Assembly: GCA_009103225.1 (NCBI GenBank)
Contig: RHPI01003330.1
Coordinates: 426,635-490,634, forward strand
Origin: Chlorokybus atmophyticus
Taxonomy: Eukaryota > Plantae > Mesostigma and Chlorokybus algae
Direction of reading: 5' to 3'
Length of the DNA stretch: 64,000 bases
This document shows, piece after piece, positions 4,205 through 26,484 of the stretch. The translations under genes and the position numbers were made by a program. How positions within the stretch are numbered: the stretch's first letter is position 1; every line of letters starts with the position of its first letter. Under the pieces are notes generated by a model that ran no database searches, was not told the DNA's origin, and saw nothing but the letters and a program-made list of their open reading frames with translations.

Positions 4205-5181
4205 NNNNNNNNNNNNNNNNNNNNNNNNNNNNNNNNNNNNNNNNNNNNNNNNNNNNNNNNNNNNNNNNNNNNNNNNNNNNNNNNNNNNNNNNNNNNNNNN
4301 NNNNNNNNNNNNNNNNNNNNNNNNNNNNNNNNNNNNNNNNNNNNNNNNNNNNNNNNNNNNNNNNNNNNNNNNNNNNNNNNNNNNNNNNNNNNNNNNNNNN
4401 NNNNNNNNNNNNNNNNNNNNNNNNNNNNNNNNNNNNNNNNNNNNNNNNNNNNNNNNNNNNNNNNNNNNNNNNNNNNNNNNNNNNNNNNNNNNNNNNNNNN
4501 NNNNNNNNNNNNNNNNNNNNNNNNNNNNNNNNNNNNNNNNNNNNNNNNNNNNNNNNNNNNNNNNNNNNNNNNNNNNNNNNNNNNNNNNNNNNNNNNNNNN
4601 NNNNNNNNNNNNNNNNNNNNNNNNNNNNNNNNNNNNNNNNNNNNNNNNNNNNNNNNNNNNNNNNNNNNNNNNNNNNNNNNNNNNNNNNNNNNNNNNNNNN
4701 NNNNNNNNNNNNNNNNNNNNNNNNNNNNNNNNNNNNNNNNNNNNNNNNNNNNNNNNNNNNNNNNNNNNNNNNNNNNNNNNNNNNNNNNNNNNNNNNNNNN
4801 NNNNNNNNNNNNNNNNNNNNNNNNNNNNNNNNNNNNNNNNNNNNNNNNNNNNNNNNNNNNNNNNNNNNNNNNNNNNNNNNNNNNNNNNNNNNNNNNNNNN
4901 NNNNNNNNNNNNNNNNNNNNNNNNNNNNNNNNNNNNNNNNNNNNNNNNNNNNNNNNNNNNNNNNNNNNNNNNNNNNNNNNNNNNNNNNNNNNNNNNNNNN
5001 NNNNNNNNNNNNNNNNNNNNNNNNNNNNNNNNNNNNNNNNNNNNNNNNNNNNNNNNNNNNNNNNNNNNNNNNNNNNNNNNNNNNNNNNNNNNNNNNNNNN
5101 NNNNNNNNNNNNNNNNNNNNNNNNNNNNNNNNNNNNNNNNNNNNNNNNNNNNNNNNNNNNNNNNNNNNNNNNNNNNNNNNN
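4205..5181. other. Assembly gap (N run)
   Basis: Run of n characters. Confidence 0.99.
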
Positions 5182-10709: not shown

Positions 10710-13700
10710 ATGCAGACCTGCGAGAGGCTGCTGGTGCTCAACGCCTCATCCGACAGCCTGCTTTCCAAGGCAAGCCAATTGCCAAGTCAAGTTACTTGTC
10801 CACCACTGAAACACATATGCCACACACATGCCACACACATACACAACAACACCACACAACCACACGCAGGTGTACAGTTTGAAGCGCGCGTGCCCGCGTC
10901 TGCTGGACCCCCACCCCCCGCGCGCGTGCGCCGCGCTCGTCAAACGCTTCCCCGAACACCCGCGCGGCCTCATGCTTGACAAGGTGGCTGTTGATGTTGG
11001 GATGGCTGGTGCTGTTGCGGGTTTGCAACAACTCACCAACGTATGCGTATGAGTTTGTAGGGTGACAAGAATGGGGCGGAGGCGTTGAGAGCGAGTGCAC
11101 CGAAGGTGCTGCTGGCGCTGCAGCCGTGGTACACGGTATGTGTAATGTGTATCAATTGCGCAAACAGACATGCACACACAAGCACGCGCATGCAGGCACA
11201 CAAACACATGCGCGCGCGCACCTTCAGCACGTCCCCGCTGCGCAGGTGTTGGTGGACTTCGTGCTCTTCCACGACCACGCCATCAAGCTGCTCACTGAGA
11301 CCAGCGCCACAGTGACTGATTTCTCCGTACGCATAACATCAACTCTATGCTTGATAGCTTCACGCAGTTGCAAGATAAGTAACTCGACTCAAACTTTTGA
11401 CTCTGCACCCAGGCAAGAAGGAACCCCGTTGTACTGCATGGCTTCATGAACCTGCTGTGCGGGCTGGTGAAGCTGCACCTCCTATGCGCGCAGGCAAGCA
11501 AGAGTGTTGATGGCAGAATGAGGAAACATACTAGTAACTAATGTATGTGCTTGTGCGTGTGGACTCCAGTTGCCGTGCAAGCTGTTGGTGCAGCTGTACG
11601 CGCTGTGCGTGTTCAACTACGGTGGGACAGACCACCCGCTGCACGCCAGGTGGACACTGGTGGTATTCGTTTGCTTGGTCCAAAGTCTCTACTCTGTGCT
11701 TACATATCATGGCCATACAACGCAGGCTGGTGGGGTTCATTGACACGTACGAAGTGCCGGTCCCGCAGCTCCAAGTACAGCTGCAGATCTGCGCCACGCG
11801 CATCAGCGAGGCAAGCGGGACTCGCGCATGTGTGCTGGCACATGGTTGTTAGCATGTGCCGGAGCTTGTGTGAGTAAGTTTATGTATGTGCGTGCGGGTG
11901 GGCGGGCGGGCGGGCGGGAGTGTGCGTGTGCGTGTGTGGGCATATGTAAGTGAGGGCACATGTGCATTTGTACGTATGTATGTGCGCATGCGTGCGTGCA
12001 TGCATGTGACTGTGTGTGGCCATGTATAATTGAGTCCATGTGTCCGGGTGCATGCGTACGCGCACTGTGTGGACATATGCGTGGCCATGAGCGCACCATG
12101 AGTGTCTGTGCGCGTGAGTGCCTCAACATCCATACACAGCTGAAAACACAACGTATCAAGAATACTTATAGGTGCTCGAGTCCGTTGCCGCCCCTCCGCT
12201 GCTACTGTTCTCCACCACCGTACGCCGCCTCCGCACCGACAACCTCCTCTGCCCTTACGCCAGCCCCAATCAACAACAACAGCAACCACCCAACAGCAAA
12301 GACAACCACAGCGGGCCCACAACTGTCGCTGACTCACCAGTAAACACGAACACGAACTCTGTCTCATCTCGAGCACAAAACCAAACATGACACCTTCTTC
12401 ATGTTTGTCCATCTCCTCTTTCAGGTGTACGATGACTTGGCGCACCTGTCGAGCTACAAAGCGTGGGTGCTGTTCGGCGTGCTGGCGTGCCCGGGTGCCC
12501 TCGCGCTTGCGCCCTCACATACAACAGCGCTCAAAGCAGCACTATCGGACGGGATACTCGTCTCGTTGTGGCGAGACGAGGTACAAGTGTTGCTGTTGTT
12601 GTTGTTGTGGTGGTGGTGGTGTTGTTAACTAGTGTGTCTTTGCATCGAAGGTGATTTGCGTGCATGAGGAGTACGCCTTGCACGTGCACTCGCACTTGGC
12701 CAATCTGGCAGCCCATCTCAAGAAGGAGAGCAAGCACACGGACAACAAGCAACAACAGCACCAAATACACCAACAACATGTTGTTGGTGCTGTTCTGGAC
12801 CACAAAGCCACCAAACACCTGGTCCACGACGCGTACGACGCGGCGGTGAAGCAGTCCGGCGGCCTGCATCGGGAACGGCGAACACTACTGCGCCAGGAGA
12901 TGAAGAGGCTCGTTGGGTACTTTGCTGAGCAACCGGGCGTCATTGCGCCCAAGCTGCCGGTACGTGGTGTGTGCGTGCGTGCGCGCATCTGTGCGTATGC
13001 AAACACGCCCTCGCGCGTGTACGCGTGCGTGTGTGTGTTGTCGCAATCTGCCAATCCCCACCAACAATTTTGTTGCCAGCTTGCGTTGGCGGCGTTAGCG
13101 CTTGTCAAAGATGAGGTCGAGTGGTGCGTGCGGCACGCTGCCGGCGTCTCGCAGGGGCAGCAGCGCGCGAGAGCGAGTGGCGCAAAGCTGCCGCCCGTTC
13201 AGCCCAAACCACAGGTACTTTATGTTGCGCACTGTGGGGTCGTGCAGTGTAGTATGGATGAGCCATGGCGTGCTGCATCCATGAAGATGTTGTGTATGTG
13301 TGTGGGTCTGCACGTGTTGTGTAGGGTGACTTGAGTACGACTGTAATCACATATTATGTATCGTATCTGCTAGGTAGGGTAGCATTGTGTCGTCAATCTG
13401 GCCAGCAGTAATGCCAGTTGTGAGCCGCAAGCGGGCCGAGCATGCCGTTGGTTCAGTTTCACATGGTCATTTGTCCCGCAGGACTTCCACGACCCGCTGC
13501 TGGGCGAGCTCATGGTCGACTCGGACGCCCTCTCCCAACTCATCCTCAAATACAAGCGAGGTACACACTTACCCTCCCCCGCCCCCNNNNNNNNNNNNNN
13601 NNNNNNNNNNNNNNNNNNNNNNNNNNNNNNNNNNNNNNNNNNNNNNNNNNNNNNNNNNNNNNNNNNNNNNNNNNNNNNNNNNNNNNNNNNNNNNNNNNNN

Positions 13701-16700
13701 NNNNNNNNNNNNNNNNNNNNNNNNNNNNNNNNNNNNNNNNNNNNNNNNNNNNNNNNNNNNNNNNNNNNNNNNNNNNNNNNNNNNNNNNNNNNNNNNNNNN
13801 NNNNNNNNNNNNNNNNNNNNNNNNNNNNNNNNNNNNNNNNNNNNNNNNNNNNNNNNNNNNNNNNNNNNNNNNNNNNNNNNNNNNNNNNNNNNNNNNNNNN
13901 NNNNNNNNNNNNNNNNNNNNNNNNNNNNNNNNNNNNNNNNNNNNNNNNNNNNNNNNNNNNNNNNNNNNNNNNNNNNNNGCGCAGAGTCGATGAAGGTGAG
14001 GGAGGGGGGGAGGGAGGGAGGGAGGGAAGTTGGGTGGGTGGGTGGGTGGTTGGGAGGGTGGGGGGCATGCCGAGTGGCTTGCGGTTGCAGGCGTTAAGGT
14101 TGGACTGCGCGAGGTTGGCGGCGTTAGCCCTGTCGTCAAAGGTGTCGTTGGCGCTGCGGGCGCACTGCGCTTCATCATCGGTGTCGGCGGGACTGCCCGA
14201 TGCGTGCGCCGCCTTGGCTTCAGTAGCATCGTGGGCCAGGTATACAACTGCATTTGCTACGAGATGTGTGATTTATCACGCCGGTATGTGACTGTTGCTG
14301 TTGCTGTTGCTGTTGTTGTTGTTGTTGTTGTCGTTGTTGTTGCTGTTGTTGTTGTCGTTGTTGTTGGGTTTCAAGAAGAGCCAGTCCCCATGCCTTGCAA
14401 ATCCCACAGGTACGTGGACGAGTTTGCTGAGGTTGTGGCCGAGCGCGCCTCTCTCGCGGGACTATTTGAGTACCGGCATCATGTACTGAAGGTGGGGCTG
14501 AGAGGGCAATGCCTGCGCTATCATCTTGCTACCTTGCTACCTTCCATTGCACAACAGAATGACGTGAGTTGGATTGTGACGTGTTGGATACTGACCTGTC
14601 GTGAGCTGCACAGATGCAAGCGGCTTGGGCCGAGGCCAGCCCTTCAAGCTGCCTTGCGGTCCTGCAGGTCTGCCCAAGAAACCCCGACACACTGTTACTG
14701 ACCGAGGTACAACACAATACAACACACGCACCCGCGCCCCTACGTACACCAGCACACTAGCACGCACACGCATGCGCCTGCATCTGTGCGCACGCGCACG
14801 CGCACACCGACACAGGCACGTTCGCCCACTCAAGTAACACACAACGCCGTTCTCTCCAGGTGGTGTCCTTCGCCCAATCATCCCTCGCCTCCTGCGCAGC
14901 CACTCTCACTCGCGCATTGGACGGCTTGGCATCCTCGCGCGCAGAGGTTCTGACCGAGGGCGTGTCCATGGCAGCCGCGGCTCGCAGAGTGATCACTTCG
15001 GTCACCGCCACGGGAGGCGGCAAGGGCAAGAAGGGCGGCGCGGCGGCGGCGGCGGGGGAGGCCATGGCGACGAGGAGACTGCCGGGGTGGGAGAGCAGGA
15101 GGGAGGCGGCGGGGGAGATTGAGAGGTGAGGGAGGGAGGGAGGGAGGAGGGGTGGTTTGCGTGCATGCTTCTTCCTTTACAAATATGAGTATGTACGCTG
15201 CGTGCACGTGCGTAATGGCCCTGCACTTTACGTACAAGCTCTCGGATGACCTGGTTCTGCAGAGAAGCGCTATCAATCTCTTGTAACAGCGACAACCCAA
15301 TCTAAAGGTCGTTTCATTGGACAGGTTACAGCATTACCTGGACGTTGGGATCGGGACAGCCGCAGCGTTGAATGCGGCAGGTCCGGTGCACATCGGCCCA
15401 CATGTCCTCGACCCAAGACTGGTACTTCTGCACGCGCACGCGCGCACGCACCCGCGCATGCACCCGCTTGCAACTATTACACGCGCACACGTATGGTACA
15501 CACCTGTGCACTCAAGCGTGCGCGCGCACACATACACACATGCACGCACGCATGCGCACGTGCGTGTCTGTGTGCATGCTGAACCACCCTGACCACCCGC
15601 AGTCCCTTCTGGACGCCCTGCGTTCCTGGCTGCGTCTCCGCGTGCGCGACTCCTGCTCCTCCGTCGACTCCGCCGCCGCTCTGAGGGGCGTGGAGGGCAG
15701 GGTCGAGGGGCTGATCGCGGCCGTGCGCATGATAGAAGCACAAAGTATGTTCGAGGAGGAGTCTTTGTGGGCTTGGGATTTGTCACAATAGACTGATCCG
15801 ATATTGTGCAGTGAATGTGGATGTGCAGCAGCTCCTGCAAGAAGTGCTGCTGTCTGAAGCTGGCAGGCAAGTTGGAAGGCATCGGTGTTACTCAGTACTG
15901 CCTGCGGTTGTGGTTGTTGTTGTGGTTGTTGTGGTTGTTGTTGTTCTACCAACACTCACAATTGGTTCACAGCAAGTTGATTGACAAGGGCGAGACAGCC
16001 GCGCAGAGCATCGCTCAATGGTAAGTGCCTACTGCTGACAAAGTTGTTGCAATGTATGACGTGTAAGAGACGTCCCAACCACATTTTCACGGTGCAGGTG
16101 CACAAATGCCGTGATCCGTGACGCTAAGACCACCCTCGCAGTGTACTCCCCCTTCCTCAACAGCTTCGTGCACGCCAAGACCGGCAAGGCAAGTTGTGTC
16201 TGGACCAGTTGTCAACCTCGCCATCATCACCTTCATCATCATCCTGTTGCAGACCGTGCTTGGGGAGAGCGAGCTGGCGGCGTTCGTGCGGGTGTTTGGG
16301 CCCGGCGGCGCCCGCGTGCTGATGGAGCGCATCACAACGTGCATGCGCGAGTGCATCAGAGACATCGAGGTCAGATTGGGTGGTTGTTGGGTTGCTGTCT
16401 GATGTTGGCTTTAATGATGGTAATAATGCATGCAGAGTGTTGTCACAGCCAACTCAACAATTCTTCATGAGTTGTCATTGGCGTTCCAGCACGAGTCAAT
16501 GCGAGCAGCGTGCCTGAAGAAGTTCACCGGTAAGTGGTGTCACACCATCTTATAGCAAGCCCACCACATTCACCCTCTTCTTGTCGTGTGTCCAGACGTG
16601 GATGCTCTCACAACAAGCATGCTCGTTCTCGGGCAGTGCCTGGCATTGCGACGGGTGCTTGCGGCAACGGCCCGAGACGGCGTGTCCACATTGTCATGGG

Positions 16701-24369: not shown

Positions 24370-24497
24370 GTGCTGCGAAGCATCTGGGGTGGCATTCGCA
24401 ATCATTTTGCGGGGATAGGTTGAGTGTGCATTGTGCCTTGGCCGATTCTGTGTAGTGAGGCGGGAGCAGGCAGGAAGAGTGCACCAAGCTCATCAAC

Positions 24498-25337
24498 ATG
24501 GCTGCCATCAGCTCCGCCGCTGCTGTGATTCCCACCGTCGCCACGTCGGCCTCCGCCAAGCCCGTCACCGCCTTCAACGGCCTCAGGAAGAATGTCGCCT
24601 TCGGCAAGGCGCCTGCCACCTTCTCCCAGAGGACTGTCACCAATGGTGCCACCACCTCCATGATCCAGGTTTGTGTGCCCAGGAGATGAGATGTGACTGC
24701 ATGTGTGTGCGTGTGGTGGTGCCGGGGCGAAGTGGGTAGCTGTATCTGTTGCTGGATGTTGCAGTGCTGTTGGCTTGCATGCCGTGACAGGCGGTCTGTA
24801 GTGGTCCTAGTCGGTGCAGTATGGCTTGAAGATGTATCAGGACGAAGTACTGCTCATGTTGTTGCTGCCTTATGTGCTGCAACTCACAATCCGGATTGCA
24901 ATCAGGTCTGGTCCCCCATCAACAACAAGAAGTTCGAGACGATGTCCTACCTGCCTCCTCTGAGCTCCGACGGCATTGCCAGGCAGATTGACTACCTGCT
25001 GAACCAGGGCTGGATCCCTTGCATCGAGTTCGACCACAGCGGCTTTGTCACCCGCGACTACAACTCTGGCCCCGGCTACTATGACGGCCGCTACTGGACC
25101 ATGTGGAAGCTGCCCCTCTTCGGCTGCAACAACTCCCAGCAGGTCCTGCAGGAGATCGATGAGGCCAAGCGCGCCTACCCCAACGCCTTCATCCGTGTCA
25201 TTGGCTTCGACGCCCAGCGCCAGGTGCAGTGCGCTGGCTTCATTGTCCAGCGCCCTGGACAGCAGTTTGGTGGACAGCAGCAGTTTGGTGGACAGCAGCA
25301 GTTTGGCAACCAGCAGCAGTATGGCTCCTACTACTAA
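24498..25337 (+). CDS. RBCS: Rubisco small subunit precursor, 2 exons (24498-24668, 24906-25337), with Q/G/aromatic C-terminal extension
   Basis: Transit peptide, then MIQ|[60 protein letters not shown] are unmistakable RbcS motifs. Confidence 0.99.
25257..25325 (+). repeat. In-frame 15/18-bp tandem repeat encoding [23 protein letters not shown] at the RbcS C-terminus
   Basis: ggacagcagtttggt / ggacagcagcagtttggt / ggacagcagcagtttggc / aaccagcagcagtatggc read directly. Confidence 0.95.
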
Positions 25338-26484
25338 GTGCCAAGAGGGCTGAAGAGGGCTGCCTACACCTACTCGTTTGCCAACCGAGCCGCATGCAGC
25401 TGTCCAGAGGCAGCTGAGAAAGGGCTCTTGACTTGTTAGAGATACACCCACCCACATACCCACCCACATACCCCGTTGTGCTTGAGGTTATGCCGGGCAC
25501 TGTGATACCTACGAGACAGCTGGCCTAGCTAATTGTTGTGATACTGTGTAGCTGTTACTGCTAGGCATTGGACCTTGGCTGCAACTATGCAGACTTAATG
25601 TGATATAGTCTGATTGTGTCCCACCCATCGTATTGCCTACATGTTCAAGGTGTCTGCCTTCTTTGCAAGCGATGATGCAGATCTGTGCATTGTGACTTAG
25701 CAAGATGTTGTGCAGGGAAGTTCTGGGGCAAACTGCTACGCCAGCTGCAGTTTGCCCCAGAGCACGCTATTGCAGGACGTGCAACGTGCAATAGGCAAAG
25801 ACCGTAACAAGACAACTGGTATGAACTAGGGTAGTGAGCAAGCAACAACGGCAATGTGCATGGCTTGAGGTGCTAGCACAGCTACAAATTCATCATAAGG
25901 CATAGCAAACATGCACAGCTTCCTGAAATTGCCCATAGCTGTCTGTCAAGCAGACAATTGATGTAAATTGTTAGACAGATATCCATCACAATCCGGCAAG
26001 TCACGCGTGCGTGTTGGCTGTTGAACTCGATGTGCGTCACCATGCAGAAAGTGATGTGCACCTGATTGGGAGAAAAACGCAGCAGATACCATAACGATAA
26101 GCACATGCTGCACAAAACCACCACGCACAGCTGACAAGTCTATAAAGCAGGCAGTAACACTGCCACCATGGACAGTTCTCTGCTTGATTGATTTACCCAA
26201 CCATAGCGTCCAAAGTGACCAGCATCTGAACATGCGATCTCAAGGACTCTGTCAGGAGATTCAATCAGGAGCTTGGCTGGGAGGCCATCGCCTCTACCAG
26301 AAGGAAATCCTGTCCACTAGATTTGATAAAGTGTACTCTCTACTATTTATCTTGTACTCAACTACTCTGGTTATGACTATTGATGTTATTGATGTTATTA
26401 TATATGTTATCCCCTCCTTTCTTGAAGTTAATTTCTTCCCCCTCCCCCTTGCCTTGCCTGAACCTGATGCGCGTTGCCCAAAGG

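Follow-up and report, generated by a model that had tools for sequence, protein, structure and literature searches.

The RbcS gene at 24498-25337 of the window, i.e., of the whole 64,000-nucleotide stretch that was analysed, is a canonical, expressed nuclear Form IB RbcS gene of a Chlorokybus-type streptophyte alga, and its product carries 26 additional low-complexity residues at the C-terminus. A streptophyte alga had been named as the host from the letters alone, and the identification of a Chlorokybus type, an alga with pyrenoids (PMC8611356), agrees with this. The most likely function of the tail, put forward tentatively and by analogy, would be weak homotypic tail-to-tail cohesion that favours Rubisco clustering or partition into the pyrenoid.

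Gene structure and identity

One nuclear RbcS gene with two exons is coded on the + strand. The following parts were annotated:

24416..24497, + strand, 5' UTR (minimum extent); X1 and X2 transcript-type contigs begin at 24416-24425, and the ATG is at 24498
24498..24668, + strand, coding part of exon 1, chloroplast transit peptide of 57 codons ending ..TTSMIQ (ORF and frame)
24669..24905, + strand, intron of 237 bases, GT..AG (joint in X1, with 0 differences, and X2 contigs)
24906..25256, + strand, exon 2, mature RbcS core to ..FIVQRP (Pfam, AlphaFold, and solved-structure matches)
25257..25334, + strand, C-terminal low-complexity tail of 26 residues (translation, composition, and X1 contig)
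25260..25324, + strand, 18-bp tandem repeat CAGCAGTTTGGTGGACAG encoding the tail (Tandem Repeats Finder and unit-by-unit reading)
25335..25337, + strand, stop codon TAA (ORF and frame)
25338..25638, + strand, 3' UTR; transcript contigs stop at 25622-25638 (X1, X2)

The exon-2 product was used as the query in sequence searches. It matched Pfam PF00101 (RuBisCO_small) with E 6.8e-38 and 129 bits against a gathering cut-off of 27, and the match spans profile positions 1-97 of 97, corresponding to residues 10-117 of the product. The invariant 16-residue RbcS core block was found there too. Chain 9pvb_M was recognized as the best solved-structure match (E 6.9e-58), and the solved RbcS of spinach, tobacco, and Arabidopsis were matched at E 1e-51 to 1e-58. 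The core is about 60% identical to RbcS of flowering plants. The nearest protein is P0002 (JGI Chlat1 / EukProt Chlorokybus atmophyticus model 9225), with 92% identity in the core. The leader coded on exon 1, 57 residues long and Ser/Ala/Thr-rich, runs to ..SMIQ, after which VWSP follows, and it is alignable with the transit peptide of P0002.

No second RbcS copy was found within the window by tblastn. The search of 5.8 billion proteins did not return the window's own RbcS, though it returned the paralogue P0002, and the gene may be absent from the public Chlorokybus gene set or modelled differently there. The assembly of the window has gaps of 977 N (4205-5181) and 392 N (13587-13978), and a single N at 1308.

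Transcription and splicing

A contig of X1 bridges 24665/24903 over the GT..AG intron with 0 differences; the cut fits equally well 3 bases rightward, at 24668/24906, and there is no X1 depth within the intron. X5, a run of low depth, has coverage through the intron, as DNA would. In X2, which comes from a separate study, the same splice was found. The entire tail is transcribed together with the 3' UTR, as documented by an X1 contig of 427 bases (25196-25622) with 0 differences and 0 gaps, and X2 contigs over 25227-25288 and 25278-25638 have no differences inside the tail. Confirmation in cDNA had been proposed as a check of the sequence-only reading, and spliced and tail-covering transcript contigs from two independent studies now supply it.

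The zero-difference transcript contig rules out an assembly error as the origin of the tail. An unspliced or mis-called 3' end was ruled out as well, since no joint among the transcript contigs takes the tail away. Besides the intron joint, just two others were seen, each in one low-depth X3 contig: one skips 91 bases of the 3' UTR (25344-25436), and the other skips 177 bases (24719 to 24897) wholly within the intron. Word depths in X1 were about 190-285 for this gene versus 110-275 for the other RbcS variant, and in X2 the isoform looks like a minority of the RbcS contig depth, contig depth being a poor measure of expression in both cases. A 12-bp tandem repeat ACCCACCCACAT (2.3 copies, 25446-25473) was also noticed inside the RbcS 3' UTR.

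Sequence and predicted structure of the tail

The frame of exon 2 runs 26 codons beyond ..FIVQRP (CGC CCT coding for R P) to TAA. The sequence-only reading had given this continuation as encoded by an 18-bp tandem repeat; its transcription was exact, and Tandem Repeats Finder agrees with it (25260-25324, period 18, 3.6 copies, 89% matches, score 95). The tail is composed of 11 Q, 7 G, 3 F, 3 Y, 1 N, and 1 S, i.e., 46% Q/N, 27% G, and 23% F/Y, with zero charged and zero aliphatic residues. Regularly spaced aromatics, also claimed earlier, are indeed there: the six aromatics in 26 residues follow one another as F/F/F/Y at intervals of 6 residues, with YY after them, and the Q/G spacer is uncharged. 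Each tail has three FG, one YG, and one YY. The label prion-like is justified by this composition, dominated by Q/N/G/Y and free of charged and aliphatic residues, but not by length, as prion-domain predictors usually apply a threshold of roughly 60 residues.

In the AlphaFold model, computed with a 30-sequence alignment, the core has helices at residues 21-33 and 77-90 and strands at 37-43, 65-67, 95-102, and 107-115, with block-mean pLDDT of about 90-96 over most of them. The tail has no secondary structure in the model; its block-mean pLDDT falls to 37-39 (residues 121-143), with values below 50 from residue 122 onward. No helix was predicted by AlphaFold in tail residues 118-143, and a heptad pattern is absent. 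The tail is predicted to be intrinsically disordered.

Tails among other RbcS

The C-terminal anchor pattern Q.Q...F[IL]...P was locatable in 177 RbcS-type proteins, 118 of which stop no more than 5 residues past it; the long "tails" in this set are for the most part RbcS copies in tandem or evident read-through artefacts. Among 76 RbcS C-termini from fetched loci (75 metagenome loci and Logan contig L001), 74 end within 11 residues past the anchor and two are longer. All solved RbcS chains stop within about 5 residues of query position 118, none of them having a counterpart of the tail. No descriptions of Q/G/aromatic RbcS tails in streptophyte algae or chlorarachniophytes were found in the papers searched.

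A comparison with paralogues and relatives had been proposed along with the cDNA check. It revealed similar low-complexity F/Y tails on P0002 and on RbcS of Klebsormidium type, of Amorphochlora, and of environmental origin:

P0002, Chlorokybus: tail DQQNQGMNQNMNQGRNYY
P0121, Klebsormidium-type: tail GQQQFGSSSFGGRYKY
P0003/L001, Klebsormidium-type, transcript contig of ERR11260125: G/Q/S/Y tail of 61 residues
L002/P0280, Klebsormidium-type: 79-residue tail of GS-Y repeats and then an RG-rich stretch
P0271, Amorphochlora amoebiformis (chlorarachniophyte): 56-residue S/G/A tail with three SSSFG units
P0124, environmental: tail rich in P/Q/Y
P0278 (P0278/P0096), environmental, Klebsormidium type-2: 87-residue Ser-rich tail with two WEDxPSFFG motifs
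P0145, environmental: tail polyG ... YSW

The tails of P0002, P0003, L002/P0280, P0121, and P0271 resemble that of the window gene: they begin directly behind the conserved F[IL]V..P, are of low complexity, contain aromatics at intervals, and end in an aromatic. P0121 has the GQQQFG unit in common with the window tail, and P0271 the xxxFG repeat pattern. These five tails are 16 to 79 residues long, differ in their units (NQNM, GS-Y, SSSFG), and are mutually unalignable. In the P0278/P0096 protein, a charged REEPRREEPRQR stretch is located between the two WEDxPSFFG copies; judged by its sequence, WEDxPSFFG has more the look of a repeated binding motif than of simple low complexity.

At least three Chlorokybus RbcS paralogues share sequence through ..QRPGQQ (..QRPDQQ in P0002) and then diverge. 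The second RbcS variant in X1 matches the window gene up to 25265 (..QRPGQQ) and continues thereafter with GFGTGG... The tails of the window gene and P0002 both begin with ..QQ and finish with YY, and differ in the middle. All three known canonical Chlorokybus RbcS (the window gene, P0002, and the X1 variant) are thus tailed, each differently. Two RbcS of K. nitens were found, P0008 and P0023, ending with GQAFF and GQY only; further paralogues were possibly missed. The Spirogloea RbcS P0020 is without a tail.

When the last 40 residues of the window protein were searched against 5.8 billion proteins, P0121 was the single match, E-values at this database size being too strict for short simple queries. 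The P0003 tail as a query matched only itself there, which is not evidence of absence for the same strictness of E-values. No usable match was obtained in the ESM Atlas with the tail alone as a query.

The lineages in which tails were found raise the question of stress tolerance. The tail could allow reversible gelling or protection of Rubisco on drying, or alter its solubility or turnover, in aero-terrestrial algae, without relation to CO2 concentration. Hydrophilic Q/G/S/Y tracts are a typical trait of proteins gelling as they dehydrate, and the tailed relatives come mostly from the Chlorokybus and Klebsormidium lineages or from environmental assemblies. Amorphochlora, however, has an FG-type tail and is a marine alga. 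Chlorokybus and Klebsormidium are terrestrial or subaerial algae, and PMC8611356 describes sandstone cracks as a habitat. A role in stress is considered very improbable.

Evolution of the tail

A maximum-likelihood tree was built on RbcS cores, with the tails left out. In this tree, the window RbcS was classified together with P0002 (100/98), adjoining the Klebsormidium type-1 clade (86/85). Long- and short-tailed RbcS of Klebsormidium type are interleaved, with P0003 (61 aa) beside P0012 (5 aa, GQAQF), and Amorphochlora, P0124, P0278, and P0145 are placed elsewhere. Their position on different branches of the RbcS tree points to several independent gains of one type of sequence, and the interleaving of long and short tails together with the scattered branches indicates multiple origins and lability of the tails. 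RbcS with short ends terminate in ..QRPGQAFF, GQAMF, GQSNF, or GQAQF, and the unit GQQ(Q)FG of the window gene, as far as can be read from its sequence, looks like a tandem multiplication of an ancestral GQxxF/Y end.

Codon usage of the tail differs from that of the rest of the gene. GC3 is 0.65 in the tail versus 0.87 elsewhere (Fisher p = 0.01); Phe is coded by TTT in 3/3 cases in the tail versus TTC in 9/10 elsewhere, and Gly by GGA/GGT in 5/7 cases versus GGC in 11/12. Such non-preferred codons suggest that the tail is young or under weak translational selection. Sites one step from a nonsense codon make up 8.5% in the tail versus 4.0% in the core, and 20 of the 234 possible single-base changes in the tail give a stop. 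This density makes long neutral survival of the tail somewhat unlikely, an argument of qualitative use only, because the cores of the paralogues have about 6% nucleotide divergence and too few truncating hits are expected.

These data bear directly on whether the tail is a tolerated by-product, in which slippage of the CAG-rich 18-bp unit lengthened an exposed and unconstrained C-terminus and the expressed product has no particular role. Such an origin would leave a tandem repeat of recent age, as seen here with 89% matches among its units, non-preferred codons within an otherwise strongly biased gene, tails wholly different in paralogues with 92% core identity, and tails that come and go among close Klebsormidium-type relatives. 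The RbcS C-terminus accepts even GFP, and an ancestral GQxxF seed would bias any expansion to G/Q/F. Against this, the same composition (uncharged polar spacer, spaced aromatics, and aromatic last residues) occurs on separate branches, also in tails not seeded by GQxxF, such as SSSFG in Amorphochlora and P/Q/Y in P0124. Every known canonical Chlorokybus RbcS has a tail, and that of the window gene is untruncated although stops lie one base away at so many sites. We regard the by-product explanation as rather doubtful. Were the tail inert, it would be a clear example of an exposed RbcS C-terminus freely accepting repeat expansions.

Possible role in Rubisco clustering

For tail cohesion, we infer surface display on the holoenzyme, cohesion itself, and a role in the pyrenoid, in the following manner. 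The tail arose by tandem duplication of an 18-bp unit that probably copies the ancestral ..QRP-GQxxF/Y end, with the aromatic C-terminus (YY) kept. The C-terminus of RbcS is solvent-exposed and accepts appendages, so that an L8S8 holoenzyme containing this isoform would carry as many as eight tails on its surface. The aromatic stickers of FG/YG type that each tail would offer in Q/G spacers would make Rubisco a patchy particle capable of numerous weak aromatic contacts. Through cohesion between tails, Rubisco would then more readily cluster or enter the pyrenoid matrix, with or without help from a separate linker.

The composition of the tail fits a sticker-and-spacer pattern, and the tail with terminal YY is retained in both the window gene and P0002. 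The recurrence of similar tails in related algae suggests that they may help with Rubisco clustering in the pyrenoid. Klebsormidium has pyrenoids, and against cohesion, long tails are probably not needed for the pyrenoid in the K. nitens lineage, as its two RbcS found end with GQAFF and GQY. The tail is also short and would alone be a very weak sticker. Its lability and young look fit a tolerated repeat expansion too, and the G/Q/F seed motif could steer neutral expansions to the same composition.

By analogy with other systems, a condensation role would be physically plausible. C-terminal RbcS fusions with GFP or YFP reach the pyrenoid in Ulva (bioRxiv 10.64898/2026.07.16.738900) and in Amorphochlora (PMC10927497). 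Weakly dimerising sfGFP on RbcL condenses tobacco Rubisco (PMC13655443). Two further findings count against cohesion. In Ulva, an extended RbcS is lowly expressed and was judged an unlikely linker, and the separate linker SUPA1 acts there (bioRxiv 10.64898/2026.07.16.738900). In Amorphochlora, there is a separate linker candidate, PPAP28, despite the tailed RbcS; the RbcS of this alga is described as streptophyte-like, possibly via gene transfer (PMC10927497). The passages of PMC10927497 on RbcS, C-terminal, linker, and disorder hold no discussion of the tail of this RbcS.

Chlorokybus has a single chloroplast with two kinds of pyrenoid, a central starch-sheathed one and a naked one at the edge (PMC8611356). 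Aromatic RbcS tails could be a convergent built-in Rubisco-clustering device of early-diverging streptophyte algae, namely Chlorokybus and Klebsormidium relatives, and of chlorarachniophytes with streptophyte-type RbcS, with a chemistry unlike that of the hornwort extension treated below, and the three Chlorokybus tails could sort Rubisco between the two pyrenoid kinds. This wider idea is at present unlikely.

Comparison with known systems

FUS-type [G/S]Y[G/S] domains, oligopeptide repeats of yeast prions, and cohesive FG repeats of nucleoporins are aromatic-rich low-complexity domains. The tail is like them in uncharged Q/G/S/N spacers, regular F/Y including FG/YG, and predicted disorder. 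These domains are far longer, with tens of stickers (the FUS low-complexity domain has about 214 residues), whereas the window tail has six aromatics and its multivalency would have to come from eight tails per holoenzyme. The resemblance is in composition only and does not represent homology.

Separate Rubisco linkers are EPYC1 of Chlamydomonas, CsLinker of Chlorella, SUPA1 of Ulva, and PYCO1 of a diatom (PMC13655443; bioRxiv 10.64898/2026.07.16.738900). Like the tail, they are disordered and repetitive and could make Rubisco multivalent. They differ in being separate proteins, mostly with basic motifs binding RbcS or RbcL, whereas the tail is part of RbcS and uncharged. Short RbcS/RbcL-binding motifs, such as those used by EPYC1, CsLinker, and SUPA1, bring up a further explanation, namely that the tail is a docking peptide that binds a neighbouring Rubisco body or a pyrenoid protein (linker, starch-sheath or membrane tether, or chaperone), with partners or destinations specific to each paralogue. 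The two kinds of Chlorokybus pyrenoid (PMC8611356) would suit this, as would at least three paralogues that differ after ..QRPGQQ (..QRPDQQ in P0002), and the twice-repeated WEDxPSFFG of P0278 resembles a binding motif. The characterised Rubisco-binding motifs are, however, basic and helical on binding, and the tail has neither charge nor predicted helix. Docking is distinctly unlikely.

For tail cohesion, the closest precedent is RbcS-STAR of the hornwort Anthoceros agrestis, a C-terminal RbcS extension that condenses Rubisco by homotypic contacts (Robison et al. 2026, Science 391:1070, via PMC13655443). The sequence-only reading had named an extended hornwort RbcS, and PMC13655443 bears this out. 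RbcS-STAR is like the window RbcS in having full RbcS plus an extra C-terminal region, in being expressed alongside other RbcS, and in belonging to a streptophyte lineage, and STAR makes hornwort Rubisco self-sticking without a separate linker. It has two predicted alpha-helical regions forming tetrameric coiled coils (PMC13655443). Unlike STAR, the window tail has only 26 residues in an uncharged Q/G/F/Y repeat with no predicted structure; the two were compared by description and predicted fold, and condensation was shown for STAR only. A coiled coil of STAR type was ruled out for the tail by the lack of a helix in the AlphaFold prediction, and a confident core with a structureless tail means that the tail is not a helical coiled-coil extension of this type. 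The window protein is a member of the RbcS family and, by its predicted structure, not of STAR type; it would work, at most, like RbcS-STAR.

New are the QQQFG-repeat tail of this paralogue, the shared junction ..QRPGQQ (..QRPDQQ in P0002), and the link to the ancestral GQxxF end, as well as a broader group of RbcS with FG/YG tails, that of Amorphochlora among them, and the lability and young look of the tails. To our knowledge, there is essentially no molecular account of streptophyte-algal pyrenoids. Engineering of pyrenoids in crops wants the simplest means of condensing plant Rubisco, and hornwort RbcS-STAR is proof that an extension of the small subunit can do it. If tail cohesion is true, an uncharged tail of 26 residues would be a much smaller module, easily transplanted and tunable by repeat number. 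The tailed RbcS of Chlorokybus, Klebsormidium type, and Amorphochlora are natural variants in length and chemistry for testing the clustering idea.

A different kind of extension was observed in P0146, an environmental RbcS of chlorophyte type. Its C-terminal extension of 75 residues, with the end ..REIMLLRAELKSARA...LAKIAALEKLNL, is helical/amphipathic-looking and, going by its sequence, may be a coiled coil analogous to hornwort STAR on a chlorophyte-type RbcS.
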